DNA of 64,000 bases from Octopus sinensis (taxonomy: Eukaryota): contig NW_021833274.1 in assembly GCF_006345805.1 (NCBI RefSeq), positions 99,052 through 163,051 of the forward strand. The letters run 5' to 3'. The notes under the pieces are model-generated. The model did no database searches. It was not told where the DNA came from and was given only the letters and a program-made list of their open reading frames with translations. Positions within the stretch are counted from its first letter, which is position 1. Each line of letters begins with the position of its first letter. Positions 4,016 to 60,005 of the stretch are shown piece by piece. The position numbers were made by a program, and so were the translations under genes.

Positions 4016-7000
4016 TTAAACCCACGCAGCCCAACCCTCAAACATCAAGGAAAGATTGTTAATGTCCTGTGATTTGGCCATCTCCATGTCAATCTAATCA
4101 TAAATTCAGACAAAAACCAGTTCTTCTACAGTCCTTTCATACCCATCATCACTCAGTCCTCTCAATCTCTTCTCAACAAAACCAAATTCACCCCCAAACG
4201 AATTACTTGATGCCTCCTTTCCACATCCATTATCCAGTAGCCCATTTTTAAACATTTCCAAGACATTTTGCACACCATTAATAACCCTAAACTCAACATG
4301 TGGACATTACTCATTAAATACTCGTTGCATTTCATTTATTGTATCACATGTGGGTTTTCTTTCAGTCAATAAGCCCTCAAGATATTTCAATCCTGATTTG
4401 AGTTGGCTGCTAATACGACATGGTCTCTATAATTGCCATTAATGGGGACTTACGTTATGTAAAGGACACTCATCCATGACTAGAACTATGACCTCAACTG
4501 CTTTCGTCACTTTAATGACTAATCCCTTAAGTATAGACAGTTCAGAAGTCTTATATAACATGTTATCATATATATAACCAAATACAAATCCTTTCTTTCA
4601 AAAGTCACTTTTTTCTTAGATATTTCTTGCATTTCGGCACTCAGGTGAGTTGATAAAAAAGAAAGCCATTTTGGAACTTTTGAATGAAGTGGCTGATATA
4701 TTGAAAATAAAACAAAATACTTTTATTCGCAAAAGAGAATGCTCTACTGGTAATATTTTAGACTGAATATCTTTATATCTTTTAAGCAGAGCAGTATGAC
4801 TAGAATGGTATATAATACTTAACCTGTGTATATATTTGGTCAGTCGGTAAAAATCAACACGCTCCAATGAAAATCTACTCTCTTCAATCACCAGTATTGC
4901 TGTCAGGTGTTTCTTAAGTGCAGGGTCGATGGTTATTTCCTTTACTAATACCAAAAAAATCTACCTCCTTTACTCTTTTTAGAAACTCAAATCTAATCGA
5001 CATTGCTTCTTCTGACAAGTTAAACAACCACATATATGTTCTATGTGTAGTATCAACAAACCCAGAATATATATTTATTATATCTTGACTGATATACAGC
5101 TGATTATGACCGAGTTTGGGCACATATAGATCAGCGAGTGTGTTTATTATAGAATCTAAAGGCTGAGAGATTACATCCAAAGAAGGAAATGAAAACTCCT
5201 TGCAAGATGAATGAACATAAATCAATATATCAACGATACTGAGTCCAATCCGAATAAGACATGTGATTATGTAATATCGAAATATTTTAAATGTGGCACG
5301 ACTTGCCCCCATTTGAACGTACAAATATTCAAACTCACTCCAAGGCACTTGCAACTCTTCAAACACAGAATATGCTTTTATTACGTCATCAAAAGCTTCA
5401 ATTTCTCGGGTTTCAACCTTACTACCATCCATATACTCTGACAGACTATTGGGACTACTGCCTTCCACTAATTCTCTCAATTTGAGTATTTCAGGGTCGT
5501 TTCTGAGAAATGCAGCAAGTACAGGTATCACAACCTTCGTGATATAAGCAGCATACAAGTTCTGAAATATAACAACGTGATGGAACCTTATGTACTACTA
5601 CAATTTGTCTAAATGTCCCCACATCAGATATATCCACACATTCCGAACTACTGTCAGTCCTTGAAAAATTTTCAATTACATTCTTGGGTCTGTACTGGCC
5701 CATTTCAGTTATGTCATTCGCAACCGACCTAATCATATACACTAATCATTACTCCGAATAATTGTCAATATATTCAGTCAAAAGACTAGTCAGTCTAAAA
5801 ACTACGTGATAAGTCCTTCCAATAGGTGGAGCCTACATTTAAGATGTATTTCATACTAGTTTTATCATATCAACATATTCCTGTATGATAGAACTTGTAG
5901 TACTCACAGATCGTAACAAGTCTACCGCCTCCTCTACTCTGCTCTTCAATTCAATAATTATCCCAAGCATATTCCTCAATGAAGATGTACATTGTTCCAA
6001 CTCTTGTTCTGCATGTCTTTGTTGTTTAACTCTATTATAATTTAAAAGTTGTCTTCACCTTTTCTCGAAAGAAGAATGCCAACTTTTACCTGAGGACACA
6101 TATTCCAATTGGTCTCTTATTTTATCATTTTGATTTTTTAAAACAATATTACGCTGATTGAGCTCTTCAGATGCACTCAATTCCATAATGGCGTTGTGGA
6201 AATAATCATCAATTCTATGTGTCAAAAAATTCTAAAACTAACGAGGGGGGCAAAGAGTTGACAATATAAGAAATTAGACACGACTCACAGTAATTTGGAC
6301 ATGTTGGTTTATCTGTCTGAATTGACTCATTGGGTGGACTGTATAAAAATACTTTGAGAATAGACATGAGAGTCATTCTATCCGATCGCAACATTTGCAT
6401 AATATTAATCAAAGTAGAACGAAATAAGCCCTAATCTGTCAGTCCGACAACCACCTTCATTCCAAATGGTCCAAGAGCTCTCTCAATGTTACGTGTAAGA
6501 CGGAAAGGCACTTTCTCGGGTGTCTGGAGAGTCTTTCCCTTATCAAAACAAATTTTGAAATCTACGTGGATTATCTGCAATAAATCGTCTTTCCAACCTT
6601 TCCAGTCGACAAATCAAGAAGAATGTTATCCAAATGTCTGTCACCTAATCCAATGATGTAACCCAGCCCTGACATGACAGCACATGTCCGACAAAACATG
6701 TTTGTTGCTCTCAACCAAGTTATTTTTGAATCACAACAAAGCCACAATTTCCTATATTTAATTAAAAAATCAGCATACCGCGATATTAGCGAATTAGGTG
6801 TTTCAGAACATAGTTTCTGGAATATTTCTCTCTGAAGATCATGAGGCCACAGTCTCCGAGGCTTTCCAACATACTTTGAGTCATTCTAAGAACTGCATAC
6901 ATTTCCAATTGATTTGGCTGCGGAGTAGTAAATATCTCTAATAGACAATTGGCCATTTCCAGACTCTCCAAGGAACTGTGAGTAGATCTGTTGAAGGGGT

Positions 7001-12990: not shown

Positions 12991-14943
12991 GGAACTAAGT
13001 CTTTGGGCCAGGAACTACGCCCGTTTCAGTTGGGCGTCGGTGTCCGCGGCGGCTGTGAAGCTGCTGTCCATGCCGCAAGAAAGTTTATTCCGCCTCGTCC
13101 GAAAGGCCGGATAACGCCTCTGTACTCGTGAAGCTAGACTTGACAAATGCCTTCAACAGTCTTCGTCGGGACTGTATTCTCGAAACTTGCTACCGCCGTG
13201 CTTCCTCAATTGCCCGCTTGGTATCTATGGCTTACTCCAAGCCAAGCCTTCTTATTGCGATGACCAAATCCTACATTCCAGCAACGGTGTTCAACAGGGC
13301 GACCCACTTGGCCCGTTGCTTTTTGCCCTGACGATCGATCCTGTTGTTCGGAACATCTCATCTCGTTTCAATGTATGGTACCTGGACGACGCTACTATCG
13401 GAGGTCCGGTAGCTTCTGTCCTTAAAGATTTGGAAAATCTGATCCCCTCCCTTAATTCTCTTGGCCTATCCATCAATCCGCTCAAATCCGAAATTGCCAA
13501 TATTGGCTTTACCCCAGAAGATTTTACCTCTGTATTTAATACGTTCTCGAATGTCCTTCCAAATATCCGCAGGACCTTGATTGAAAATTTGAAAATCTTA
13601 GGGTCCCCTATATCTAATCTGGGTGTTGAATCATCCCTATATGCTAAAACATCCTCGCTGGTGGCAAACATCCTCGCTGGTGGCAATTTCTAACAAACTA
13701 GCAAAAATCGATTCCCATTCCGGCCTGTTTTTCCTACGCAATTGTTTTGCAATTCCAAGCTTCTATTTATCCTCAGAAGTGCCCCATGTTTCTTTAACCT
13801 GAGGGCTCTCGAATCATTTGATTTTTCGCTTAAATCCAGCTTGGAGTCCATTTGCAATATTACCCTCGATGAGATCGGTTGGCAACAGGCCATCCTTCCT
13901 ATAAGCCATGGCGGTATTGGTATCCGATCATCTGTCGACCTTTCTATCCCGGCGTACTTATCTTCAGTTAATGCGACAAATGATCTGGTCCAGGAGATTC
14001 TCCAATCCGTAACCGAATCATCTATGGACACAGAGTCGGTCGCCGCAGAAAGTTGCTGGAAAGGGATGTCTCTGGAAATCCCGGAGAATACGCACGCCCA
14101 AGGCAATGGGACCGGATCCTTTGCGACCACAAGATAAACAGCCTCAAGCCGAAACTCAATCACATCGCTTGGCGTGCTTATTGGCCGCCTCGCAACCATA
14201 CTCCGGTGCATGCTTACAGCAATCCCTATGGCGTCAATCGGCACCTAATGGACAACGACTGTGTAGGATTTCCGTCTCTCTCCGCCTCGGACTTCCCATT
14301 TGCAAAACACAACCAGTGCCGCTGCGGTTTAAGAGTGGACCCTTATGGCCATCATCCCCTCTCCTGCTCACGTAGTGCCGGACGTTTCCCACGACACGCC
14401 GCCATCAACGACACCGTGAGCCGTGCCCTAACGACGGCGGGGTTTCCTAATGAGCTCGAACCAGTCGGGCTCGACAGAGGCGACGGTAAGCGCCCGGATG
14501 GCATGACAATCTTCCCGTTTGAAAAGGGGAAATGCCTTATCTGGGACGCACCTGCTCCGACACTTTCTCGCCAAGAATCTAATTGCCTCCGCTGCGGAAC
14601 CGGGCTCAGTTGCAAAGCAGGCGGAACTAACAAAACAGAAGAAGTACCGGGTCCTGGCCATGAATCACCTATTCGCTGCAGTCGCGGTGGAAACCTCTGG
14701 AGTCATCGGTCCGCAGACGCTATCGTTTCTCCGTCGCCTTGGATCTAAGCTCGTGGTTGCCACGAAAGATCCCAACGAGTCGATCAGACTCTTTCAAAGG
14801 ATCTCATTGGCCATCATGCGCGGGAATTGCCAGTCGATTCGCTGCGCATTTTAACTCTTTTCGTTCATCTTAATAATAAAATGGTATGGTGTGTGTCTGT
14901 CTGTCTGTCTGTCTGTGTGTGCACACCAACTTCAAATTGGCAA

Positions 14944-15830
14944 TACGATGTCCTCGACTTACATGATGAGGTCCTTAAAACCTTCCCCCCAAAAAAATTA
15001 AAAAAAAATTTTCTGCATTTTGGTTAAAATGAACAACTACAATGTCCTCGACTTACATGATGAAGTCCTTAAAACCTTCCCCCCAAAAAAAATTAAAAAA
15101 AAATTTTCTGCATTGGTTAAAATGAACAACTACAATGTCCTCGACTTACATGATGAAGTCCTTAAAACCTTCCCCCCAAAAAAAATTAAAAAAAATTTTC
15201 TGCATTTTGGTTAAAATGAACAACTACGATGTCCTCGACTTACATGACGAGGTCCTTAAAACCTTCCCCCAAAAAAAATTAAAAAAAAATTTTCTGCATT
15301 TTGGTTAAAATGAACAACTACAATGTCCTCGACTTACATGATGAAGTCCTTAAAACCTTCCCCCCAAAAAAAATTAAAAAAAATTTTCTGCATTTTGGTT
15401 AAAATGAACAACTACAATGTCCGACTTACATGATGAAGTCCTTAAAACCTTCCCCCCAAAAAAATTAAACAAAAATTTTCTGCATTTTGGTTAAAATGAA
15501 CAACTACAATGTCCTCGACTTACATGATGAAGTCCTTAAAACCTTCCCCCCAAAAAAATTAAAAAAAAATTTTCTGCATTTTGGTTAAAATGAACAACTA
15601 CAATGTCCTCAACTTACATGATGAAGTCCTTAAAACCTTCCCCCCAAAAAAATTAAAAAAAAATTTTCTGCATTTTGGTTAAAATGAACAACTACAATGT
15701 CCTCGACTTACATGATGAAGTCCTTAAAACCTTCCCCCAAAAAATCAAAAAATTATTTTCTGCATTTTGATCAAAATTAACAACGCGAATGTCCTCGACA
15801 TTCATGATGAGGTCCATTAAAACCTTCAAG
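14944..15830 (+). repeat. ~94-bp minisatellite: 9 full units + 1 degenerate unit
   Basis: Unit starts at 14944, 15038, 15131, 15225, 15319, 15413, 15505, 15599, 15693 and ~15786. Variation is mostly in C and A run length. No spacers. Confidence 0.95.
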
Positions 15831-16035: not shown

Positions 16036-16240
16036 GCACGACTTTGAATAGAGTGTGCAATTAACAGATTTTGAAAAACCACTTTGATAGTTGAAACCAC
16101 ATTAGCACAATCATTAACACAATTTACCACCAATTGACGCACGACCTTGAATAGAGTGTGCAATTAACAGATTTTGAAAAACACTTTGATAGTTGAAACC
16201 ACATTAGCACAACCATTAACACAATTTACCACCAATTGAC
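16036..16240 (+). repeat. 2 x ~103-bp tandem duplication inside the Helitron
   Basis: gcacgac(t/c)ttgaatagagtgtgcaattaacagatt...ccaccaattgac occurs twice. The same duplication is present in copy 2 (~59149-59352). Confidence 0.9.
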
Positions 16241-18129: not shown

Positions 18130-21100
18130 GTTATGAATCTCCATTTGGGGCAGACCTCTGGCTTGGGGAACCTCTATTTTTGGGGAAACCCTATTTTTTG
18201 GGTAGTTTGAAAAGGATATAATTTTTTTTGCGGTAATTTCCAAATTAGAAATTACCGGAACCTCTAGTGGCACAGGATTTTAATTTATATACATATTTGC
18301 TATTAAAATTAAATTTCAATAAGTTTAATTTCTTGTGGTGTCGTGTATGTCTGTTTTCACCAGTCTGCAAGCAAATCCTGAGGGCTCTCTTACAAAAGAT
18401 ATTAGAGATAACCAACAACTATTGGTAAGAAGCAAGTCTTCGGGGCTACATGATCCCCATGAAATTTGTGGAAACTCTCCTACCGAACATGTCTCACCCC
18501 ATCTAATCCCTCTTAAATCGGTGATCGGTGAGGAACACTCTAACGACAAAGTCAAATGGATTTCTGGTGTTGTGGAGTCAGCGAAGAGACGATTTGGCAG
18601 AATTCCTCGTGGGGATGGAGACTTATTGCCGAATGTTTCAACGTCCGCTTTCTCACTCAAAAGAGTGTCTCTGATGTGAAAAACTTACTGAATGTAAAGC
18701 CCTGCTCTAATGGCTGTGGCAGTCGAAATAATGTGGATACCTCAGATTACTTATTGCCAAAGACAGAAATCTCCATTTATGGTAAATGCAAGGAAGAGTT
18801 TAATCTCCAAATTCAGGAACTTAAGTCAATCCCACGAAATGCGAGAATGCCCACAAAGAAGATTCCGTATAAATTGCTAAAGACTGATGTTCTTGTCGCA
18901 ATTAATGCAGTGATTTCGAACTATATATTATCTTCTCCGCCTGCAAGCATAAATGAAATCACGGATATAATTTATGCCGGGCAATGCTCATATGAAAACA
19001 TTACGAGGCAACCCCTAACAAAAAGCACATGGCTTGAGGATACGGAAAGAAAGATTTCCAAACTTAGAGAAAATCTAACTTTCGTTAATAAGTTTAATGG
19101 CCAGCAATCTAAAGACGAAAAAGAGAAGACACTGAACATTTTATGCTCGTTTGGATACAAAAAATCCAGAAAGGGAGAGCTGGCACGCGTATCTAGTCTT
19201 ATTGAAGATAGAGTCAAAATTATGGAGAAAAAAATCTCAACCTATCGCTCCAGAAAGTCGTTTAGACAAGATAATTTCTGTTTTGAACTAAACAGGAGAA
19301 GATTCTATCGAAGACTGAACTGTGAAAACAAAGATTCTGATTGTCAAGTCCCAGAAGATAAGTGTCTATCTTTCTGGAAGGGCGTATGGAAGAAAGAGGA
19401 GAACCGTGCTCCTAAAGCTATTGTTGGTAAGCATATTACTGGAGCTGAACAGCTTCCAAGTGACGTGAAAACTGATTTTATCAAGAATGTTATCCAGTGT
19501 GTACCCAATTGGAAAGCCGCGGGTTGTGACGGAGTTTATGGATTTTTTATCAAAAAGTTCGAAGCTCTTCATGGCCATTTGTGCGATGAGATCCTTAAAA
19601 TTGTGAACGGAGGCTATTCCCCTGCTGAGTGGTTTTACACAGGAGTAACATACCTCATTCCAAAAAATGAAAAGTGCCATTCCCCAAATGACTTAAGGCC
19701 GATTACCTGCATGCCTATATTGTACAAACTTGTCACTAAATGTGTGAATACAAAGCTTACAGACTATATCGAAGCGTTTAACCTTATCTCGGATAATCAG
19801 CTGGGAGCTAGAAGGCAATGCCAAGGCGCAAAGGAACAAGCACTAATAAACCAGTGTGTCAATAGTGAGTATGGAAATAACTTATTTGCAACGTGGATCG
19901 ATGTCAGAAAGGCATTTGATTCTGTCAATCATGAATTCTTATGTCAAGTGCTTGATCAGTCTGGAATTCCGAATTGGATCACAAATTTTGTGAAAACTTT
20001 AATCAAAAATTGGAATGTCATTTTGACACTTAACAATAAGAGAATTGGAACTGTAAAATTGGAAAGAGGAATCTTACAAGGAGACTCACTCTCTCCACAA
20101 CTCTTCACTCTGGTAATGGATCCGTTAAGTAGGAGCTTGAATATGAAGTTCCCGAAGGTGCGTATAGGTCAAAATGACCCGTTCACGGTTTCATATTCAA
20201 CAAACCATTTGTTGTTTATTGACGACCTGAAAATAATTGCTGAGAAAGAAGACACCGTTCTAAAAATGATGGAAGATGTCGATGAATATTTTGATGCCGT
20301 TGGCCTCAAGAGGAACTCGGAAAAGTCTGCGACTAACCTGGACTATGTGAAAGATACAAAATGTCTGGATGGGTGTGCTGGGTATCGATACCTGGGAGTC
20401 TTGGAGGATAGAGGAAGTGATGTCAAGAAAATCGAGGTAATGAAAACAATTGCTCGAAACGTGAAAGAGAGAATCGAGAGTCTTGCAAAAACAAAGTTAA
20501 GTGCAGTAAACCTCTTTAAAGCGATAAACGAATATGCACTCTCTCTACAACTACTATATCGGATTGATCGACATTGAACCGAGTGAGTTTGATGCCATTG
20601 ATCTGGTAATTCGTCGCATTCTAACTACTTTACGAATCCATCTGAAGCCCGCTAATAAAGAAAGATTATATCTCGGCAGAAATGGTTTTGGAAGAGGCTT
20701 AATCTCAATTTCCAATAAGAGCGAATGCATCCTGCTCCAATTTCTCTCCGACCTTGAAAGAAAAGCCTCGTTGTGCCTCAGAAGAGCAGGAATCTTGCGG
20801 GTCTTGAGAGAAAAGAAAACACATATGACCACGATTGCAAGATTTCTCGCTCTCAAGTACAATCTGGAAGACCAATCAAAATTGGATGTAAACCTTATTA
20901 AGGAGTGCCAGAAGAAAAGACTAATGGACACCATTAAATCTAAGATGATACATTCAACGCTGTTTAAATGCATTCAGGAACCGAGTGCTGATATCGTGGA
21001 GTCCAATGTATGGCTAGCCAATGGGAACAATGGCCCAAAGGCCGAGGCACTATATTGCTTGGCCCAGGATCGCAATTTGTTTTTCGGAGAGGCAAAGCCT

Positions 21101-22658
21101 AATTGTAACCATTGCGGCTCGGCAAGAAAAACCGTGGATCACCTAGCTACTCGATGTAGCAGAATGCTTCACGGGTCATACATGCGAAGACACAATGAAA
21201 TTGTCAGATGCATACATCTACACGTCTGTCGTCAGTACGGAATAAAGAAATGCAAGAAATTGAAAGCACACTCAGTCCAGTCGGTCGTGGAAAATAGTCG
21301 TGTTGAAATACGAGTAGACATGACGTTGCAGACCGACATTGAAGTTAAAAACAACAAGCCAGACATTTTCGTGCTTGATAAAATGAAAAATGAGATAACG
21401 ATAATCGAAGTCGGGGTCACATCCCAGGACAGGTTAAAGCAAGTCGAAGTAGAGAAACTCCACAAGTATGATCTACTTGCTGGAGAATTGGCACAGATTC
21501 ACAAGGCAAAAGTCACGATAGTCCCTGTCGTATTGACATGGGATGGGGTAGTGACCAAGTTCTATAAGTCCTACATGAAAAAGTTGAATATAGAGGTCCC
21601 GACTAAGGCGTACATTCAATCAGTGACAATCAAGAAAACCCTGGAGAGCATGGTCGTTGAATACAAACATGGCATGAAGGTCGACAACTACCAAATTGAG
21701 AAGGAAACGGATAGTCTTATCGCTAGAGGAGAAGAACTGGGAGTGTCAGTTGACTTGCCAGAGGAGTCTGCTTTCTTACTGCAATACGAAGAGGAGAGGT
21801 GTCAAGACATGACCGGTCAACGGAGTAGTTCCCCTAAGAGAAGAGAGAATATCAATTAATTTTTAATTTTCGTTTAATTTTTGTAATTGTCTAACGAAAA
21901 AAAAAAAAAAATTAAAATTAAAATTAATTATATAAAATTTCATTGAAGCCTCGTGTAATTTTTGTATTCTTGTTGTTATGGCTCGTAAGCTTAGTCCTTG
22001 AGTTAAAGATCAAAATTGCCAAGGAATTAAGTGAAAATAAACATCTTACTGAACGAGATATGAGATAGTACAAAATTAGTAAAGGTTTTTTATTAATGTA
22101 ATTTTCAGGCGCTGTGTCACGTATTAAAAAAATTATCAAGGTGCGATCGGCAACAGATTCCTAGTTCAAATTTTTTAGTTAACAGTGAGAAAGAAAATTT
22201 GGACACGATAATTGCAGACGTAATTGCTGAAAATGAAGAAGAAAATAATGATGAGTCAATATATGACCAAACTGAATGCAACTGTTCACACTTGGACACG
22301 ATAACAGCAATGAATAACCTTGAAGAGAATATTCACCGTTTGTTTCCCGATGCGTTAAAAGACTATTACAATTTCAGAAAAATATTGGGCATACATATGA
22401 AGAAATCTGCAACAGGAAACAAAATAACAGATTATTTTCGTGTAATAGAATAACTCTAATTATCAATAAAATTAGTGGAAAACATGTTAAATGTTCTTAA
22501 AAATACTTATTTATTTTATTTTAATAAATAATGAAAAATATGCTAAAACTATTAAAATTTTTATAAAAATAAAGAAAATTTCAGACCTCCATTTTTGGGG
22601 AAACCTCTATTTTTGGGGCAATTTTTCAAAATTGATGCCCCAAATGGAGGTTATACTG
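18130..22658 (+). mobile_element. pogo/Tigger-type DNA transposon deletion derivative, interrupted by the R4-like element
   Basis: 14-bp inverted repeat ctccatttggggca (18139-18152) / tgccccaaatggag (22636-22649); right end CTG|TA. Degenerate ORF from ATG 21978 encodes a CENP-B-like HTH (LELKIKIAKEL...YKISK-GAVSRIKK after removing a 24-nt intron) and a Tigger-type C-terminus KITDYF (22199-22453). Left terminus poorly conserved. Confidence 0.65.
18314..21910 (+). mobile_element. R4/Dong-like RT-RLE non-LTR retrotransposon, near full length (~1170 aa if two slips are corrected)
   Basis: RT motifs WKAAGCDG, LRPITCMPILYK, WIDVRKAFDSVNH, GILQGDSLSPQLF, HLLFIDDLK, YRYLGV. CCHC finger CNHC...HLATRC and RLE NNKPDIFV...IIEVGVTS...EKLHKYD. 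Poly(A) at 21897-21911. Candidate 12-bp TSD attaaaattaaa (18302-18313 / 21911-21922). Frameshifts at the G4 run 18611-18614 and the (CT)4 run 20539-20546. Confidence 0.9.
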
Positions 22659-23475
22659 TATTTCCATAATTACGAATATAGTATCTCATTTTAAATACAA
22701 AATTAAAAAATATTTTTTGAGAATCTACATATAATTTCTTTAAATGGTATGGTGGTACGATGGTATCTAAATTCCACTTTCGTCTGGCAGCTAAATTCCA
22801 CTTTCGTAAGTTAGTAATTAAAAGCTACTTTTTGAAAATTAATATTAAATTCTAGAAACGATAATTCATTTTTCCAATTTTTATATTATTTCCGATGTGA
22901 TTTTTCACCAAAGCTTGCTTGATACCTATGATTTTCTAACCATCACTTATCTTCATATTGTTTTTTTAGCAGATTCTTTGTAGTATTCATTGTTTGGTAA
23001 TATGCAATAAAATTAAAGTGTTTAACTTCAGTTTGGTAGTATTTCAAATGAAAAAATTGTAATAAAATTAAAAAAATCATTGTGATAATCGTGGAAAACA
23101 CATGTTTAACACATTTTCATGAATTTATCAGAACGGAATGATTTTTAATTGACAATATTTTTTAGCACTGTTAACATAAGAAGTTCAAAATTTATTTTTG
23201 CGGTTTTAAAAGCAAATTCTGAAAAAACCAATAAGTTCCAATCGAAGTGTTTAGAATCCGAATAAAAATTTCACTTTATAAAAATTTATATTCGAATGAA
23301 TTTGGAAAAAAATAACTTCAAAATCAAAAAAATATCAAAACATACTTTATTATGATTGTTTTATTTTTCTGAAATCATATTTAATGATTTGGGTAATTTA
23401 AGTGTTAAAATGCTATTTTACTTTTTATACATTTTTAATAAGAAAATTAATAGTTAATCAGAAACTAAGCAGATC

Positions 23476-28771: not shown

Positions 28772-30205
28772 CAGAGGTTTCCAAGCTTTTTTTTACGCGC
28801 CTCCCTTAGAGAAAAAGTACAATCTTGCGCCTCCCTTTATATTCCATAATATAATACAATTATTATTTTATCAAAAACAATTTTTTAAAACAAAAAGTTA
28901 ATGAGATAATTTTTTTTCCATCTTGGCGCAAAGTTTTTCAAATCTTGGTGTCATCGCAGAGAGTGCTACTCTTAGCTCATTAGTCACTACTAAACGAGTT
29001 CGATATTTAGATTTAATTGCAGCTAGTGCAGAAAATCCAGTTTCGCATAAATATGAAGTAGCAAATGGCAACAAAACTTTCATTGCTTTATTCGACAAAA
29101 TTTCATATTCCGTTCTTACATTCAACCAAAAAGAAATTAGCGGTTCTCTCTCAAATTTTTGTTTCAATAATGTATCGCATGACAATTCTATCAATTTTTC
29201 TTTTTCAAAAGTTGTCAATGCAAATTGATTATCTTCTTCATCAATAAATGGATTCTGTATCCATTCGAACATTTTACAGTCGAGATCTTTAAAATAGTGA
29301 GCAAAATGCTTCAACAAACAATCCAAATGTTCAGCAAATATGTCTTTGTTTGCTTCAATGTTCACTATGGCGCAAAAGGTGTTTAAAAGTGGAAACATGT
29401 CATAGATATTTTTTTGTATATTTGATTTCCATAATACCAATTTTTTCATCAGATATGTCATCAATTCTTCTAGCGACTGTGTTATCAGCAAGCGGTATTT
29501 GCTGTAATTGTTTTGCATAGGATTCGCCAAACATTGCTTCAACCATATCGATAGCTGCTGGCAAAACTAGAGTTTCTCCGATATTGTGCGGTTTCTTGCA
29601 TTTTGCAATCCTGTAAGAAACTTTGTACGATGCTAGTAAAGCATTTGAAGAGACAGAAACAAGTTTTTTTAACGATTTCGTTTGGTTATCAAACTCTTCT
29701 AATTTTCTTTTAAAAAATTCTTCAGACTTATGGACATGTTCAGAATGCATCGTTTCAAAATGTCTTCTTAATTTGCATGGCCTCATACTATCTGCTGCAA
29801 GTGTTTTGAGGCAAAGCAAACAGAGGGGTTTTTCATAGAATCAACAAAGATACGTGTGAATCCTAACAAAGTAAGATGGAAAGTTTTTCTTGTCTTTGGA
29901 GTGGTATTGATTATATTCCAATCATTTTGATTTTTTGAACCATCGTCAAAATCTTTATTATTCGTGAATTTTCTTTTGCAACCACTCAAGAATTTATTCA
30001 TGTGTTAAAATTATTTAATTGTCTAAAAATTAAATAAATTTTTGAAAAATATAATTTTTAAATTATAACTCTTATTATCGGAATATAGTCACGTTTTTTA
30101 CATAGATATAATTTTCTAAAAAATGTTTCTGATACTTCTTTCGCGCCTCCCTTGACACGAGTCAACGCCTCCAGGGAGGCGCGCCTCCCCATTTGGAAAC
30201 CTCTG
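28772..30205 (-). mobile_element. hAT (Buster/Charlie, ZBED5-like) internal-deletion derivative
   Basis: TIR cagaggtttccaa; 8-bp TSD acttagag (28764-28771 / 30206-30213). BED finger CLLCLKTLAADSMRPCKLRRHFETMH and dimerisation motif LLPFATSYLCETGFSAL; the catalytic middle is deleted near 29445. Confidence 0.92.
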
Positions 30206-30475
30206 ACTTAGAGGATGTTATTTCACGAATTTTGGAAAACAATCAATTATTCAATCGAGAAGGATAAATTATTATTGGATTGAATTGAAACTGAGGAAAT
30301 TGGAATGATTGACATACTAAATAAACTCGAATATAATATGTACACAAAATGTCTCGAAAATCTACAAATCTACTATGAATTTAGAATGAAATTAATCCAA
30401 CAGTTTAGGATAAAGAAAATTATAAGAATAATTACTGCCTATTTTAATCATTTATAATTCAATTTTCTCTCCTGA

Positions 30476-36468: not shown

Positions 36469-38532
36469 CAGGGTTGTTAGATTTAAATCATTTGATTTTA
36501 ATCAACAATAAAAATCAATGATTTAATCATTTAAAAAAATCAAAAAAATCAAAAAAATCATTTAAATTTTTTTAAATGTCTGGAAGAAAGCGTGATTCTT
36601 TGTGGGCTTATTTTGATAAACGTATTATTCCTGGAAAGACCGGAAGCCGTGCCAGATGTCGTAATTGTGGGAAGGACATACAAGGTCTTGTATCTCGGAT
36701 GAGGCAGCATCATTTATTATGTCGAAGTAATATTGATATCCCTGAAAATATGCCGAGACCTGAAAGCGAATTTCCTCCAAGGATGAAGGACCATTCATTA
36801 ATCAATTTCGTAACTACGACGACTTCATCTAAGAAAGATTTGATGGATCTGCAACTCGCTAGATACATATTTTCTACAAACACTCCGTTTGCTGCTGTAG
36901 AACATCCCGAATTTGTCAAATTCGTCCAAATGCTTCTTCCTGGGTATCGTTTACCCTCTCGTCATCAAATTGGTGGTACATTACTTGATCATGTGTACGA
37001 CCAAATACATGAAGACTGTCGACAAAGACTCCAGGACAAAACAGTGTCTATGATGTTGGACGGGTGGAGCAACATTCATAATGAACCCGTTATTTGTGTC
37101 TCGGTTGTGACATCAGATGGGGAAAATTATCTCATTGACACTGTGGACACTTCTGGATATAGCCACACTGCGGAATATCTTCAATCTGTTGCTTTAGCCT
37201 CCGCACAATTGGCTGAACAACGGTTTGGATGTAAAATCGGCAGTCTTGTAACGGATAATGCTGCCAACATGACTAAAATGAGACGGATAATGATGGAAGA
37301 TGGCAATGAAATAATTACTTATGGTTGCTCGGCACATTATCTCAACCTTCTTGTGAAGGATGTCGAGGTAGCGGACGTTAAAGGAACTATTGTAACAATC
37401 AATAAATATTTCCGAAACGTCCATCTTCCAGCTGCATGGTACAAATCTAATGGAGGAAAAAAACTCGTTCTTCCGATTGATGTACGGTGGAACACTTTAT
37501 CAGACTGTTTTCAATCTTATCTGGATAATTGGTCTATTATTTTGAGAACTTGTGAGGAACACAGAACGGATATTGATACAGAGATTTTTCCAAGGTCCAA
37601 AATATTTCCCAAACGACGCGTTGAAGAATATCTGATGCTTATTAAACCAATTGCTGTCGCTTTAGATAAAATTCAGAATGATTCTACCACGATTAGTCAT
37701 GCTGTAGAAATTTGGAAAGAACTTGAACAGACATATATTGACAATGGATGTACGAATATTTTAGGAAAAGTGAGAATTCGAGCAAAACAAGCATTAACAC
37801 CTTTCCACTTACTTGCGAATTTGATCGACCCGACATGTAGTGGGAAATCTATTTCAAATGTTGAGATTGACATTGCATTGAGTTATTGTGCTCAAAATTA
37901 TGAATATGCACTTCCGACTCTGATTAATTTCAGAGCAAAAGCTGATCCATTTAAACAATACATGTTTGCTCCGAATTTATTGAGTAAAGTATCACCTATA
38001 GCTTGGTGGGAGTCGAATTCATACCGTTACCTTCACAAGTAATTCACTATGCAAAAAAATTCTTGGAGCAGTTGCTTCGACAGGTGGAATAGAAAGAATC
38101 TTTTCAACATTCGGATTTCTACATTCAAATGTACGCAATAGGCTGGGGATCGAAAAAGCAGCCAAACTTGTTTCCATTTACAAGCTTTTAAATAAATAAA
38201 AACGATTTCCATTGTTTTTGTTTTTATTTAGTTCGCTTTGAAATATTTTTTATTTATTAACCCGAAGACCACAAAGAAAGAAAGCGTAATGCAAACTAGT
38301 TAAGTGATCCCGGTGGACATAAGGAACTACGATAGATCGTTCTGCGTGGCCGTTTTTCAGTGTTTATGTACAAAGAGAGAGGTTCTCTGATAAGCCAGGT
38401 GGAAAGGGTCGTTTTGAAATAAAGATCATTTAATTCAAAAAAATCGATTTAAATCAAAAAAATCGTGATTAAATCAAAAAAATCAGATTTTTTTGATTTT
38501 TTTGAAAAAAATCATGATTTTTAACAACCCTG
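36469..38532 (+). mobile_element. hAT transposon (Ac/ZBED-type), nearly full-length transposase, frameshifted near the C-terminus
   Basis: TIR cagggttgtta/taacaaccctg; TSD gtttttga (36461-36468 / 38533-38540); AAAATC subterminal arrays. ORF 36576-38042 has a BED finger, LDGWSN, VTDNAANM, CSAHYLNLL and VRWNT. The dimerisation motif ASTGGIERIFSTFG continues out of frame to ~38200. Confidence 0.93.
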
Positions 38533-46621: not shown

Positions 46622-47810
46622 TTATTCAGAGGGAAGCCTGCGAATCTTATAGTTCTCGAAGATAGAACTGACTAGGTCAGTCACCAAAGGATCCGTGGAG
46701 TTATTAGAAATTATTCTAATGGCAAAAACCCCATCTTGCATTAAAAAATCCTTCACAAAGTCCCTCAAATTTCCTTGATCAACAAGATCATCTCGAATGT
46801 GTTTTCTTATGTATTGAACACTGCTATTCGTAGACACAAAGTACCAACACCACTTGACTAGACTGTACACGTTGGAACAGACCATTATGACTAGCCAGAA
46901 CCAGTAGAAGCCAAAAATGGCCTCAGAGAACAAATTTATAGGAAGCACACACTGCACTGTGTAACGATGTCCTTTGATTTGGTATCCCAGTTCCCGTATA
47001 TGAACGTCACAATAAGTGCTTTTGGGAAAATAGTTAGAAACTTCATAAGATTTCCCGTATTTAAAGTTGTGGAGTAAACGAATTCCGTAAAAACTAATTG
47101 CCCCATTCGATAGCAAAATGTCTGTGAGTATGCACTGAGCGACCGTGTTGACAAAGTACATACATTTTGTTAAGATGTACAACCAACTGAGGTAGCGGCC
47201 ATATTTTTTACCTCCACAACAAAATGTAATGGCCATAAGTTCTTTTATAATATCTACTGTTTTTTCTTCATTCCTCCGCTTTCTCATTTCAAAATATTGT
47301 TGAAAATGCATCGTAGATAATTTAACAAACCTATCTCTGTCCCCAGTGTTACCTGCTTCAATATACTTGTTTGCCACTCTGATCATGCTGTCAAGGCTCA
47401 TTCCACTTTTCTCATTATTAGCCCTCCAAAATAGGCATGGAATTTGATAGAGAAAGGCCAATCCAAGCAGGATAAAAGGCATCCATTGATAGTAGTTAAG
47501 TTGAGGCTTGGAATCAAGGTCTTCGGTTTCAGGAATATATTGGTCCATAGGGATATAATATGTGTTTTTCACCCAGCATATATCATTAGTATATGCAACA
47601 TAATTAACTTAATTAAAGAATTAATTGGTACAAACATGTAAATTGTGCTGGACACCAACACTTGATTGGGGTTCCGATATATTGATAAGTCGATACTACG
47701 ACTGTGAATAAAATCAGAAGCATTGACGAATAAGTATGATTGAGACGATCAGTCCTGTCGTCGTCTGCTCGAACATTTACACTGTAGTAGACTATGTCAT
47801 ACAAATCCAT
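46622..47810 (-). CDS. Innexin (gap-junction / hemichannel protein), intact, 2 exons
   Basis: MDLYDIVYYSVNVRADDDRTDRLNHTYSS...PIKCWCPAQFT; 28-nt intron 47608-47635; then NYVAYTNDICWVKNTYY, YYQWMPFILL, FPKSTYCD, CVLPINLFSEAIFGFYWFW and QDGVFAIRII. Four hydrophobic segments and conserved extracellular cysteines. Confidence 0.93.
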
Positions 47811-50129: not shown

Positions 50130-51374
50130 ACAAAAAATCAATAATCATTTTCCAAAAATTGATTTGAATTTTGATGCCCACGTCGGGTTCTTTCTTATGC
50201 GTAACTATTTCTCAACTCCGAGGCTTTTGTACACCCTAAGGAGTTCTCCTTGTTTTCGCATGCCTAATCTGTTATCCGATATCGATTCTATCTTGAAGTC
50301 TGGAGCCGAGTATCTGTGCAACATCCATTTCGACGCTCTGGGGTGGCTTCAATCTTCCCTGCCTGTTAATCTCGAGGGGATTGGCCTTCGTTCGCCCGTT
50401 TATCTGGCTCTTCCTGCCTTCCTCTCGTCCCTGGAATCATCCCGTGCCCTCACTGACATCGTTCTCAGAAACCTTCCCGAACGAAAAATGTCAGTTGATC
50501 ACGTGGCCGCTCTGGACCTTTGAGATTCATTGTACAACAAAAGACCCAGTGACCCGTGTATCCAAGCTCAATGGGATGCCATTTCTTGTGAAGCTCTTGA
50601 CGTACATCTACGCAAAAATTTCGATCAGCACAGACTTGCATGTCTCCGCGCAGGCTGCTGCACAGGGAGTGGGGCCTGGCTGGATGCTCTCCCTGTCCCT
50701 TCCACCGGTAACCTACTAGACAAAGATTGCCTACGAATTGGTTTATCATTGCGTCTTGGATTGGAAATCTGCGAAATACACAAATGTCGTTGTGGTGCTG
50801 TCATTGACCGTTTTGGTCTACATCCCCTTTCCTGTCGTCGCAGTGCAGGGCGCGCACCACGCCATGCAGCACTTAACGACGTTATTCAGAGGGGGCTCAC
50901 GGCCGCTGGGATTCCATCAATCCTTGAACCCGTTGGGCTTGCGAGGGGAGACGGAAAAAGACCCGACGGCCTATCGACTTTCCCGTTTGAGTTCGGCAAG
51001 TCTCTGTTATGGGATGCGACGTGTTCAGACACTTTCTCGGAGCTCAACCTTCCTTCTTCAGCTGTCGAGCCTGGCTCAGTCTCTCGCAAAACTGAGAAGA
51101 TGAAGATTGGAAAGTACAAGGAGCTCTCTGAACGGTATCTGTTCACTCCCATCGCCGTCGAGACTTCCGGCGTCATCGGCGAAAAGTCTCTTTCCTTTCT
51201 AAAAAGCTTGGCCGCATGATCTCCCATAAACGGGGAGACCCACGCGAGTCCAAGTGGCTTTTCGAAAGGATTTCCTTGGCCATAGTACGTGGAAACTGTG
51301 TTTCCATTTACGATGCCGGGAATTTAGTTAGTTAATAACTATTTGTTAATTACACGTTATTGATAAAAAAAAAA
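50130..51374 (+). mobile_element. CRE-like retrotransposon, 5'-truncated
   Basis: LYTLRSSPCF, LPVNLEGIGLR, SGAWLDALP, CRCGAVIDRFGLHPLSC, KRPDG, PIAVETSG and RISLAIVRGN; A10 tail at 51365-51374. Confidence 0.88.
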
Positions 51375-54642: not shown

Positions 54643-56016
54643 CAGGGGTCACCAAACTTTTTGCACTCGCGGGCCGGATTGACCCCAACACAATGAACGC
54701 GGGCCGGAGCACGTGCATAGGATTATAATTTTACTAGAAATTCATAAGTGTGTTTTTTACAATAAAAACTAATTTAAACAAAAATAAAGTAAACAAAAAT
54801 TTTAATGAGAGCTATGGAACTGTGATCTTTTTTTGATAAGTTCATCAATATTTGGTTTTAAATTGCTGCATCCTATCATGAGAATTGATTTTAAGTGTCC
54901 GTCAGTCAATCTTGCACGATGGGCAGACTTAACATATTTCATCCTCGAAAACGTTTGCTCACATTGGTAAGTTGTGCCAAATATAGAAATCATCTTTATC
55001 GCAAAATTCTTTAGTCTCGGAAACTCATCATCCTTGAGATATTCGTAGAACTCAGCGAGTTTGGTCCGTCTGTGACAATCTTTGAGCTGTTCATTTGATT
55101 GTAAGTCAATCACTTCTAATTGTAATTCATGTTGAACATTTTCAACATTACAAGAAAATGGATTTTCGAACAAAATTATATCGCTTTCAATTTTGTCAAG
55201 TTCAGAAAACTTATGTAAAAAATGATGTTTTAATTCTTTGATAATTCCAAAAAAGAAGTTGCGATGTTCCCGAAATGTCAACTGACTCATCCAATGCAAG
55301 AGAATACCACAACATATTACTTGTCTTTTCACAAATTTGTAAATATATATTTTTTCCAAGCTCTTCAGTTCTCCGTGATACAGAACTCGCCGACAAACTT
55401 ATTCCATCAAATAAGGAAGAATTTAGTGGGCACAAACAATTAACTGCTTCAATAATGCAATTTTTGATATACATCCCATCACTAAAGGGTTTCCCGTGTT
55501 GTGAAATAATTTTCGTTATCTCGTATCCAGCTCTTGTTACATTTTCATTATTTTCAAAATTTTTTTTTATAAGGCCTTGTTGAATTTGTAAAGTGCGTTT
55601 CAGTGATTCAACTTTATCCTCACGTAGCTTTCCAGTGTACTTGGAATATATCGGAGCATGATTCGTTTCATAATGACGTCGAATGTTATACTCCTTCATA
55701 ACAGAGAGATGTTCGTGGCATATTAAACAATAAGCTTTCTGCTTTAATTCATCTTTCGCAAAAAAATACTTCAATTCCCATAATTTATTGAATACACGGC
55801 ATTCGCGGTCAACCTTTCTTTTCATATTAGACATAGCAACAAAGAAAAATTTAACGTTAATGCTGATAAGTTTTTTTTCGAATTAAATCTTGCAAAATAG
55901 TTTTATTTAAGTTAATTATTAAGGTATTAATTGAATATCTCGAAATAGTGCGCGGGCCGGATAAAATGTTGTCGCGGGCCGGATCCGGCCCGCGGGCCGT
56001 AGTTTGGTGACGTCTG
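54643..56016 (-). mobile_element. hAT SPIN-like deletion derivative
   Basis: TIR caggggtcaccaaact / agtttggtgacgtctg; TSD atttagac (54635-54642 / 56017-56024). KRKVDRECRVF...CLIC...ALDESVD joined at ~55250 to FGTTYQCEQTFSRMK. Confidence 0.92.
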
Positions 56017-57756: not shown

Positions 57757-60005
57757 TCTTAATAATAAAATGGTATGGTGTGTGTCTGTCTGTCTGTGTG
57801 TCTGTCTGTGTGTCTGTCTGTCTGTCTGTGTGTGCACACCAACTTCAAATTGGCAATACGATGTCCTCGACTTACATGATGAGGTCCTTAAAACCTTCCC
57901 CCCAAAAAAATAAAAAAAAAATTTTCTGCATTTTGGTTAAAATGAACAACTACAATGTCCTCGACTTACATGATGAAGTCCTTAAAACCTTCCCCCCCAA
58001 AAAAATTAAAAAAAATTTTCTGCATTTTGGTTAAAATGAACAACTACAATGTCCTCGACTTACATGATGAAGTCCTTAAAACCTTCCCCCCCAAAAAAAT
58101 AAAAAAAAATTTTCTGCATTTTGGTTAAAATGAACAACTACAATGTCCTCGACTTACATGATGAAGTCCTTAAAACCTTCCCCCCAAAAAAAATTAAAAA
58201 AAATTTTCTGCATTTTGGTTAAAATGAACAACTACAATGTCCTCGACTTACATGATGAAGTCCTTAAAACCTTCCCCCCCAAAAAAAATTAAAAAAAAAT
58301 TTTCTGCATTTTGGTTAAAATGAACAACTACAATGTCCTCGACTTACATGATGAAGTCCTTAAAACTTCCCCCCCAAAAAAATTAAAAAAAATTTTCTGC
58401 ATTTTGGTTAAAATGAACAACTACAATGTCCTCGACTTACATGATGAAGTCCTTAAAACCTTCCCCCCCAAAAAAAATTAAAAAAAAATTTTCTGCATTT
58501 TGGTTAAAATGAACAACTACAATGTCCTCGACTTACATGATGAAGTCCTTAAAACCTTCCCCCCAAAAAAAATTAAAAAAAAATTTTCTGCATTTTGGTT
58601 AAAATGAACAACTACAATGTCCTCGACTTACATGATGAAGTCCTTAAAACCTTCCCCCCAAAAAAATTAAAAAAAAATTTTCTGCATTTTGGTTAAAATG
58701 AACAACTACAATGTCCTCGACTTACATGATGAAGTCCTTAAAACCTTCCCTCCCAAAAAAAATTAAAAAAAAATTTTCTGCATTTTGGTTAAAATGAACA
58801 ACTACAATGTCCTCGACTTACATGATGAAGTCCTTAAAACCTTCCCCCCAAAAAATCAAAAAATTATTTTCTGCATTTTGATTAAAATGAACAACGCGAA
58901 TGTCCTCGACATTCATGATGAGGTCCATTAAAACCTTCAAGGCAAAAATCTCACGTATTAAGAATATCCTTGATGAAAACGACAGCGAGAATATTAACAA
59001 TGATGAACTCCCAATTATTCGCGATAAAGAAATTCAATTCATCCTATGTTTTTCTCTTTAAAATTAAATGCATATATCATTATCGACCATGAATCAAAAT
59101 TAAAGCTATTATCATATTTGACTTTGACAGAATGTGCAATCACAGATTGCACGACTTTGAATAGAGTGTGCAATTAACAGATTTTGAAAAACACTTTGAT
59201 AGTTGAAACCACATTAGCACAATCATTAACACAATTTACCACCAATTGACGCACGACCTTGAATAGAGTGTGCAATTAACAGATTTTGAAAAACACTTTG
59301 ATAGTTGAAACCACATTAGCACAACCATTAACACAATTTACCACCAATTGACAGCGCAATCAGAAGAATTTGCGTAAAAATATTAACTATTTACTTGAGT
59401 TTTTCGTAAAGATAGAATTTATTTTCGGTATGCCTCTTTTCCTAAACTTTTTTATTATTCAAAAATAATTTTTTAAATAGATAACCGAAGGAGGAAAAAC
59501 GAAGCTGAAGAAAAAACGGTCAGCTTAATAAGGTAATTAATTAAATCTTTTTTGTGTGTCGCTTTCTTGCCTGCCGCATCTCCCCCTGCCCCATTTCCGC
59601 CAGTAAAAAACAAAAAAATAAAAAAAGAAAAAAAAGGAAATTACAAAGGAAAAATGAAAAAATTAAATATAAAAAAAATAGACCACAAAAAATGAAAAAA
59701 AAAGTTTGCAATGACAATAAACAAGGCCCAGGGACAGTCATTAAAGGTAGTTGGGTTATTTTTAGAGAGTGAGTGCTTTTCACATGGACAGCTGTATGTG
59801 GGATGCTCGAGGGTAGGCAGAAGAGAAAATTTATTCATATATGCCAAGGAAGGACGGACGACAAACATCGTTTATCAACAGGCGATAGAATAGGGTTACA
59901 TTAAACCAGGTAGTTTTATACATCTACATAAACTTATAGTTGTTTGATGAAACAGGCCCTCCGCAGGAGCTAGGTCGCGGTGAGCGAAGCGAGCTGCCGA
60001 GCTAG
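57757..60005 (+). mobile_element. Non-autonomous Helitron (copy 2)
   Basis: A|TC...CTAG|T termini, with the same internal organisation and helicase remnant as 14868-16890. Confidence 0.9.
57857..58940 (+). repeat. ~94-bp minisatellite: 11 full units + 1 degenerate unit
   Basis: Unit starts at 57857, 57951, 58045, 58139, 58233, 58329, 58422, 58518, 58613, 58707, 58803 and ~58896. Confidence 0.95.

Follow-up and report, generated by a model that had tools for sequence, protein, structure and literature searches.

The 64,000-nucleotide stretch of DNA analysed here, hereafter called the window, lies on contig VCDQ01012393.1 of assembly GCA_006345805.1, filed as Octopus sinensis. Between positions 18136 and 22660 lies a single copy of a pogo/Tigger DNA transposon, non-autonomous and with an internal deletion. 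A 24-nt segment with GT...AG ends (22085–22108) interrupts the first helix-turn-helix (HTH) of its transposase, and the copy was later itself split by a long interspersed nuclear element (LINE). A self-BLAST comparison revealed the degenerate 5′ end of the copy ahead of the LINE, with the core of the terminal inverted repeat (TIR), CTCCATTTGGGGCAG, at 18140–18155; a search of the window for the 5′ TIR with up to three mismatches gave no match. The LINE, 3.6 kb long and nearly intact, separates this end from the ATG-bearing remainder of the pogo copy. Its two open reading frames (ORFs), at 18556–20577 (673 aa, with the RVT_1 domain) and 20534–21859 (441 aa), lie in different frames and overlap by 44 nt, pointing to one frameshift or an error in the assembly, and its poly-A tract occupies 21897–21911. 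A 12-bp target-site duplication, ATTAAAATTAAA, is found at 18303–18314 and again directly after the poly-A, and the LINE is younger than the pogo copy that it disrupts.

Downstream of the LINE, the coding part of the copy is broken at several places. An extra C at 21996/21997 causes a +1 frameshift immediately after the opening MARKLS and leads to a TGA at 21999–22001, and further on, small deletions turn the residues IVDK into MR followed by a stop, an in-frame TAG at 22066–22068 that lies 15 nt upstream of the segment. Beyond the segment, an internal deletion of approximately 970 bp takes out the second HTH (HTH_Tnp_Tc5) and the DDE_1 catalytic domain, and leaves the C-terminal remnant out of frame with the N-terminal one. 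Since the frame is broken by the frameshift, the scrambled IVDK and the deletion, an intron alone cannot explain the defects of this copy. An earlier note on this DNA, made from its letters alone and called here the original prediction, had proposed a 24-nt intron at this place; the frameshift, the TAG, the loss of HTH_Tnp_Tc5 and DDE_1 and the LINE in the 5′ untranslated region (UTR) are absent from it.

The segment itself reads GTTTTTTATTAATGTAATTTTCAG. With the G at 22084 as the last base of the exon-1 remnant and the GC at 22109 as the start of exon 2, excision gives ...YKISK-G-AVSRIKK..., and retention gives GGT TTT TTA TTA ATG TAA, with an in-frame stop inside the segment. Upstream, the frame reads LELKIKIAKELSENKHLTERDMR, a stop and then YKISKG; downstream, it reads AVSRIKKIIK. 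The window contains 4288 GT..AG segments of 18–30 nt, and about 23% of all its stop triplets fall inside a GT..AG segment whose length is a multiple of three. Because such brackets are so common, it is the homologous copies that must carry the case for an intron. If 30 nt were excised instead, from GTAAAG (22079) onwards, two residues of the turn would be lost, and this alternative receives no support from the other copies. As to whether the intron arose through tandem duplication of an AG/GT site, the similarity, in this AT-rich DNA, is too weak to favour either view.

The remnants of the window copy are poor baits. Given only the window fragments, Pfam detected neither HTH_psq nor CENP-B_N nor DDE, and a homology search with the stitched N- and C-terminal peptide of the copy returned no relatives. 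The spliced N-terminus, searched against the PDB, showed a weak likeness to the engrailed homeodomain that is probably spurious and was inflated by a tandem construct. The exact C-terminal translation, searched against 1.84 billion representative proteins, matched P0001, a DDE_1 protein (E 5e-6, 41% identity over the C-terminus). A relative of P0001, P0004, has the N-terminus MARKLSLELKIKIAKELSENKHLTERD, which is the same as that of the window copy. Among the matches listed, relatives of the pogo families number only three within this assembly, and other cephalopods contribute none. The P0004 locus, L004, on another contig of the same assembly (VCDQ01006390.1), is a near-full-length element of 1908 bp that defines what we call family A. 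Its 23-bp TIRs are perfect (CAGTATAACCTCC...), start with CAGT and are flanked by TA on both sides, and its spliced reading contains HTH_Tnp_Tc5 (E 3e-11) and DDE_1 (E 1.3e-35). The window copy is 90–96% identical to this element and lacks its positions ~412–1380.

A second family, B, with the TIR CAGTACGACCCCGGTTTGGGGCAG and a protein 53% identical to that of family A over 467 aa, is present in three copies, two at the locus L003 (L003a and L003b, VCDQ01002911.1) and one at L002 (VCDQ01001464.1). A composite of L003a and L003b yields a complete 466-aa transposase (DDE_1 E 7e-39, HTH_Tnp_Tc5 E 3.2e-13), and the DDE_1 domains of families A and B, with the motifs NCDET, LDNASCH and QPLDMG, have the D..D..D triad. 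Further removed is L006, a pogo-like element on an unrelated AT-rich metagenome contig (ENA ERZ21818093, 3473 bp, 27% GC), which has a long N-terminal extension and an uninterrupted first HTH. The window also holds pogo debris, namely a C-terminal remnant at 30263–30445 on the plus strand with 36% identity to the family-B tail, and a fragment at ~40237 that resembles the family-B subterminal repeat (GCCCCAAAACCCGAGGGTGCCCCA).

The five copies carry a GT...AG segment at the same codon, with a length of 24 nt in the window, 25 nt in L004, 29 nt in L003a, 30 nt in L003b and 28 nt in L002. In L004 the segment, GTTTTTTATTAATGTAAGTTTTTAG, occupies 2839–2863, and its excision produces one frame from the ATG, through ...YKISKGAVSRIKKNYLNFFNTGAVQTDFPRNIQ..., HTH_Tnp_Tc5 and DDE_1. 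Family B is interrupted at the same glycine codon and in the same phase 1 (KKYKTTK-G/TISRIKQ), and L003a is open for 412 codons once its 29 nt are excised. The GT and AG ends are kept in all five copies of the two families, and reading through the segment meets a stop in every one of them. Between families A and B, the proportion of nonsynonymous differences (pN) is 0.27 over 352 codons and that of synonymous differences (pS) is 0.76, which is saturated; with pN far below pS, the protein was thus kept functional during the time its gene carried the segment, and the segment must then leave the RNA. The 63 nt that follow the segment are likewise kept as protein between the families (GAVSRIKKNYLNFFNTG in A, GTISRIKQNFVYYFDAG in B). 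Because the distant relative L006 reads FKTNKSVVGRIGDN through the same position without a break, the interruption is specific to the A/B lineage. The comparison of copies thus indicates that the segment is a family feature and not damage private to the window copy. The original prediction had described a 24-nt GT...AG segment with an in-frame TAA that splits YKISKG/AVSRIKK, and this is seen in the window exactly as described; its placement of an intron in the HTH of a pogo/Tigger transposase agrees with the intron-type interruption of the first HTH that emerges from the family copies. It had also named two outcomes that would speak against an intron, a family consensus without the 24 nt and homologues that align better in another reading; the other family copies carry the segment, and the relatives fit the spliced reading best.

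Micro-introns are also found in the host genes of the window. A large PIKK kinase gene similar to SMG1 runs on the minus strand from ~12000 to 4900 as a series of about 30 short exons, its open segments lying in alternating frames. When seven GT..AG introns of 23–28 nt are removed, 474 aa without a stop result, and the alignment of this stretch to human SMG1 (E 4.9e-63) crosses five of the junctions; at two junctions in the catalytic core the alignment is gapless. An innexin gene on the same strand becomes a complete 386-aa frame when a 28-nt GT..AG intron is removed, and shows no gap at the junction relative to the oyster innexin P0010 (Table 1). The transposon segments, at 24–30 nt, are within the size range of these host introns (23–28 nt). 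The three NCBI gene models that we looked at are all wrong at micro-introns. P0006, the model of a 99%-identical innexin copy on another contig, starts past the intron position and lacks the first ~78 residues; P0003 (L003 6001–7201) begins in the wrong frame; and P0004 uses the same donor as our reading with an acceptor 88 nt downstream (L004 2839–2926), such that the recognition helix is skipped. As the 21 skipped residues are kept between the families, we regard this 88-nt intron as artefactual, the gene finder having been unable to place the 25-nt one.

Table 1. Positions in the window of the parts of the pogo copy and of micro-introns in host genes
Feature	Positions	Strand	Evidence
5′ end of the family-A pogo copy: degenerate TIR, subterminal GGGG-repeats, start of the 5′ UTR	18136..18314	+	90% identity to L004 element 7-214
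Non-LTR retrotransposon (LINE) in the pogo 5′ UTR	18315..21911	+	Pfam RVT_1 E 1.3e-31
LINE target-site duplication (second copy), followed by the remaining pogo 5′ UTR	21912..21977	+	96% identity to L004 element 178-410
Exon-1 remnant, MARKLS..LELKIKIAKELSENKHLTERD..YKISK(G)	21978..22084	+	Matches the P0004 N-terminus
24-nt GT...AG segment, probable relic of the family's phase-1 micro-intron, with TAA at 22099-22101	22085..22108	+	Homologous to the 25-nt segment of L004, position kept in family B
First part of exon 2, (G)AVSRIKKII, with the recognition helix of the first HTH; cut off by the internal deletion	22109..22137	+	
Deletion breakpoint with ~9 nt of filler	22138..22146	+	L004 element ~412-1380 missing
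C-terminal coding remnant, ..RQQIPSSNFLVNSEKENLD...KITDYFRVIE, stop at 22451-22453	22147..22453	+	88% identity to the family-A C-terminus
3′ UTR, subterminal repeats, intact 3′ TIR at 22636-22658 (reverse complement CAGTATAACCTCCATTTGGGGCA), flanking TA at 22659-22660	22454..22660	+	
24-nt intron, SMG1-like kinase domain	6431..6454	-	Gapless relative to human SMG1 across the junction
23-nt intron, SMG1-like catalytic loop (LLDLSTGK/IIHVDF)	6575..6597	-	Alignment to human SMG1
28-nt GT..AG intron, innexin gene (ATG at 47810, stop at 46622)	47608..47635	-	

The window does not fit an octopus-type genome. Median introns in octopuses measure 1,520–2,467 bp (PMC10700109), as opposed to the 23–28 nt seen here, and the matches listed for the innexin include no orthologue from another octopus species; its relatives at 99, 71, 60 and 44% identity all lie inside this assembly, and the next ones listed are from molluscs at 35%. 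What the window does fit is a genome of the dicyemid type. Dicyema japonicum, collected from the renal sac of O. sinensis, has a genome of 67.5 Mb with a GC content of 36.7%, 49% repeats and many LINE copies (PMC6736024). The median dicyemid intron measures 27 bp (PMC6543705), and two thirds of dicyemid introns are shorter than 30 bp, with GT-AG ends, AT-rich sequence and weak splice motifs (PMC6543705, PMC13644364); among animals, introns below 30 bp have been reported only for myxobolids and D. japonicum (PMC13644364). The window agrees with this profile in its micro-introns, its GC content (0.26–0.43, mostly ~0.34), its LINE and repeat content, with hAT and pogo copies as well, and its association with O. 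sinensis. Judged by these properties rather than by sequence identity, the window is most likely DNA of a dicyemid renal parasite that entered the assembly along with the DNA of its host. The micro-intron signature or these transposon families are seen on at least four contigs of the reference O. sinensis assembly, and a literature search found no published report of this contamination. RefSeq proteins named '[Octopus sinensis]', such as innexin unc-9-like and tigger TE-derived protein 6-like, would be mislabelled if the DNA is dicyemid; several RefSeq 'octopus' proteins do seem to stem from such a parasite, which affects comparative work on cephalopods.

Taken as a whole, the locus is very probably a dead family-A pogo copy with a relic of its family's single spliceosomal intron, in a host that is most probably a dicyemid. 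The anatomy of the copy, the retention of the intron across two families, the selection on the protein and the micro-introns of the host are observed; the actual splicing of the segment and the identity of the organism we infer. Intact elements would be transcribed, and the spliceosome of the host would remove a single phase-1 GT-AG intron, of ~25 nt in family A and ~29 nt in family B, that sits in the first HTH, where the turn (YKISKG) meets the recognition helix (AVSRIKK). The spliced mRNA would encode a transposase of ~470 aa consisting of the HTH, HTH_Tnp_Tc5, DDE_1 and a C-terminal tail, and the unspliced RNA would end after ~41 codons, ahead of the recognition helix. The window copy, with both of its element ends kept, could have moved in trans through intact copies before the LINE inserted.

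Several points count against this reading. The window copy is dead and its intron is a fossil without possible function, and the sample of copies is small, with two from family A and three from family B. The N-terminal HTH of the spliced peptides stays below threshold (CENP-B_N E 0.029, 14.5 bits relative to a cut-off of 21.2; HTH_23 E 0.0024), the one-base differences in segment length may in part be homopolymer errors of long reads, and the splicing itself is deduced from comparing DNA copies. When the hAT and innexin ORFs were looked up as exact proteins, the O. sinensis contig was the only record to match, with none from Dicyema, the Dicyema assemblies RDEW00000000 and GHAB00000000 not having been compared by similarity. 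Alternatively, the segment could be an old unspliced insertion, for instance a small duplication, which put the transposase out of action and then passed to all copies, with its GT..AG ends due to chance. The abundance of GT..AG brackets in AT-rich DNA, by which ~23% of stop triplets could be rescued, and the clearly dead state of the window copy would suit such an insertion, but we consider it unlikely: position and phase are common to two families that are 47% diverged in protein, with pN well below pS, the 412-codon frame of L003a exists only with 29 nt excised, and the lengths of 28, 29, 30, 24 and 25 nt are not confined to multiples of three.

That the true intron is the longer one of the NCBI model appears distinctly improbable. 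P0004 is built in this way, the frame is also kept (88 = 25 + 63), and longer introns do exist in dicyemids, in which the mean intron is 38 bp (PMC6736024). The 63 nt skipped by the 88-nt intron are nevertheless kept as protein in A, B and L006 and complete the HTH, the sub-threshold HTH matches span the 25-nt junction, and the downstream acceptor falls in the deleted part of the window copy. The validated 28-nt innexin intron was likewise overlooked by this annotation pipeline, which cut that protein short and probably cannot model such introns. If the contig were genuine octopus DNA, as the filing of the record and the NCBI protein names that follow it would have it, a 24-nt intron would be unspliceable there, and the likeness would be either meaningless or due to horizontal transfer from the parasite. 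This we hold to be very improbable, given that the SMG1-like and innexin genes on the same contig are readable only with introns of 23–28 nt, that octopus median introns are 1.5–2.5 kb and that, among the matches listed, the innexin has no counterpart from other octopus species and the pogo families have just three relatives within this assembly, with none from other cephalopods. Crossing of the segment during translation, by ribosomal bypassing or programmed frameshifting instead of splicing, would tolerate the variable lengths, and nothing specific speaks for it; the GT and AG ends are kept in five of five copies, the length is in the host intron range and, to our knowledge, no such bypass mechanism exists for eukaryotic transposases, which makes this exceedingly improbable.

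With a spliceosomal intron as the preferred reading, a broader idea can be framed, that dicyemid DNA transposons routinely carry obligatory ultra-short introns that only a dicyemid spliceosome can remove, which would throttle the transposase and lock the element to its host. We regard this as conceivable but doubtful. If true, the premature stop in unspliced RNA would limit transposase output, the element would stay inactive after transfer to the cephalopod host despite the intimate contact between the two, and this would be the first documented transposon-borne intron shorter than 30 nt in an animal. Whether an ultra-short intron restricts where a transposon can be active could be tested simply with this element. 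On the practical side, if animal transposase genes can carry introns of 24–30 nt, standard gene finders and transposon annotators would break such genes.

The original prediction had also reported micro-introns in a second transposon superfamily. The window contains a hAT transposase ORF at 36576–38200 on the plus strand, 488 aa long with zf-BED and DUF659, whose C-terminal dimerisation region continues in two other frames past 38020. Two hAT-like copies on the minus strand, at 54802–55834 and 28898–29819, combine a Spin-doc/BED zinc finger with a hAT dimerisation domain and are apparently internally deleted. In these three copies, no micro-intron was convincing: they show frameshifts and deletions, and the shifts in the first, near an A-run, resemble frameshifts or errors of assembly more than they do micro-introns. 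The claim of two superfamilies is not confirmed by the hAT copies inspected. The miniaturised-intron splicing system that had been proposed for the host is present, as the SMG1-like and innexin introns of 23–28 nt show by homology. It is a real system and not a new one, as introns of ~27 nt are already on record for dicyemids (PMC6543705, PMC6736024, PMC13644364). The suggestion of a genome-wide adaptation of the mobilome finds no support: the transposon intron is simply host-sized, which is expected for any resident intron, and thus adaptation is not demonstrated.

The remainder of the window contains further repeats and reading frames. A 94-bp tandem repeat forms two arrays, at 14944–15827 (9.5 copies) and 57857–58938 (11.4 copies), each followed after ~200 bp by the same doubled 102-bp unit (16036–16240 and 59149–59352); a single larger element with these repeats is probably present here in two copies. 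Two plus-strand ORFs, at 14053–14748 and 50530–51219, have in common a Cys/His-rich stretch (..HPLSC.RSAGR.PRHAA.ND...GDGKRPDG..) and probably belong to the same retroelement family. The N-terminus of a 204-aa minus-strand ORF at 1263–1877 appears hydrophobic, and within this ORF lies a 165-bp tandem duplication (1275–1601). An Rfam scan of the window gave no match.

As with other members of the pogo/Tigger superfamily, a part of IS630-Tc1-mariner that includes Drosophila pogo and human Tigger, the elements described here have TIRs that start with CAGT, flanking TA and the same order of protein parts, from an N-terminal HTH through HTH_Tnp_Tc5 and DDE_1 to a tail ending in ..KITDYF. They differ by an intron of 24–30 nt, below the usual animal minimum, inside the first HTH. 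Drosophila pogo is reported (Tudor et al. 1992) to join two ORFs likewise, by splicing out a short intron of ~55 nt. Introns persist only in DNA transposons, as retroelements are copied from spliced RNA. The transposase of the Drosophila P element, for example, requires the removal of an intron, and a shortened DNA-binding product is made from RNA that stays unspliced. That element is unrelated, however, and has an intron of normal length with known tissue-specific control.

Introns go unmentioned in two large surveys of pogo elements (PMC7386202, PMC7325037). The micro-introns of the dicyemids Dicyema japonicum and Dicyema sp. are of the same length class and have the same GT-AG ends as those described here, but they were described in host genes, and introns in transposon genes are not taken up in the dicyemid genome papers. 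Similar to the present families, the Tc1/mariner elements Anchois, Sardine and Thon of Paramecium, which has a genome with tiny introns, contain transposase ORFs with predicted tiny introns of the host type (PMC3464196). They come from a ciliate and not an animal, belong to another branch of the superfamily and have introns that are predicted there too; they are prior art for the general idea (PMC3464196). Set beside these systems, the pogo/Tigger families of the window are a new example in which known things are combined, with no new mechanism.

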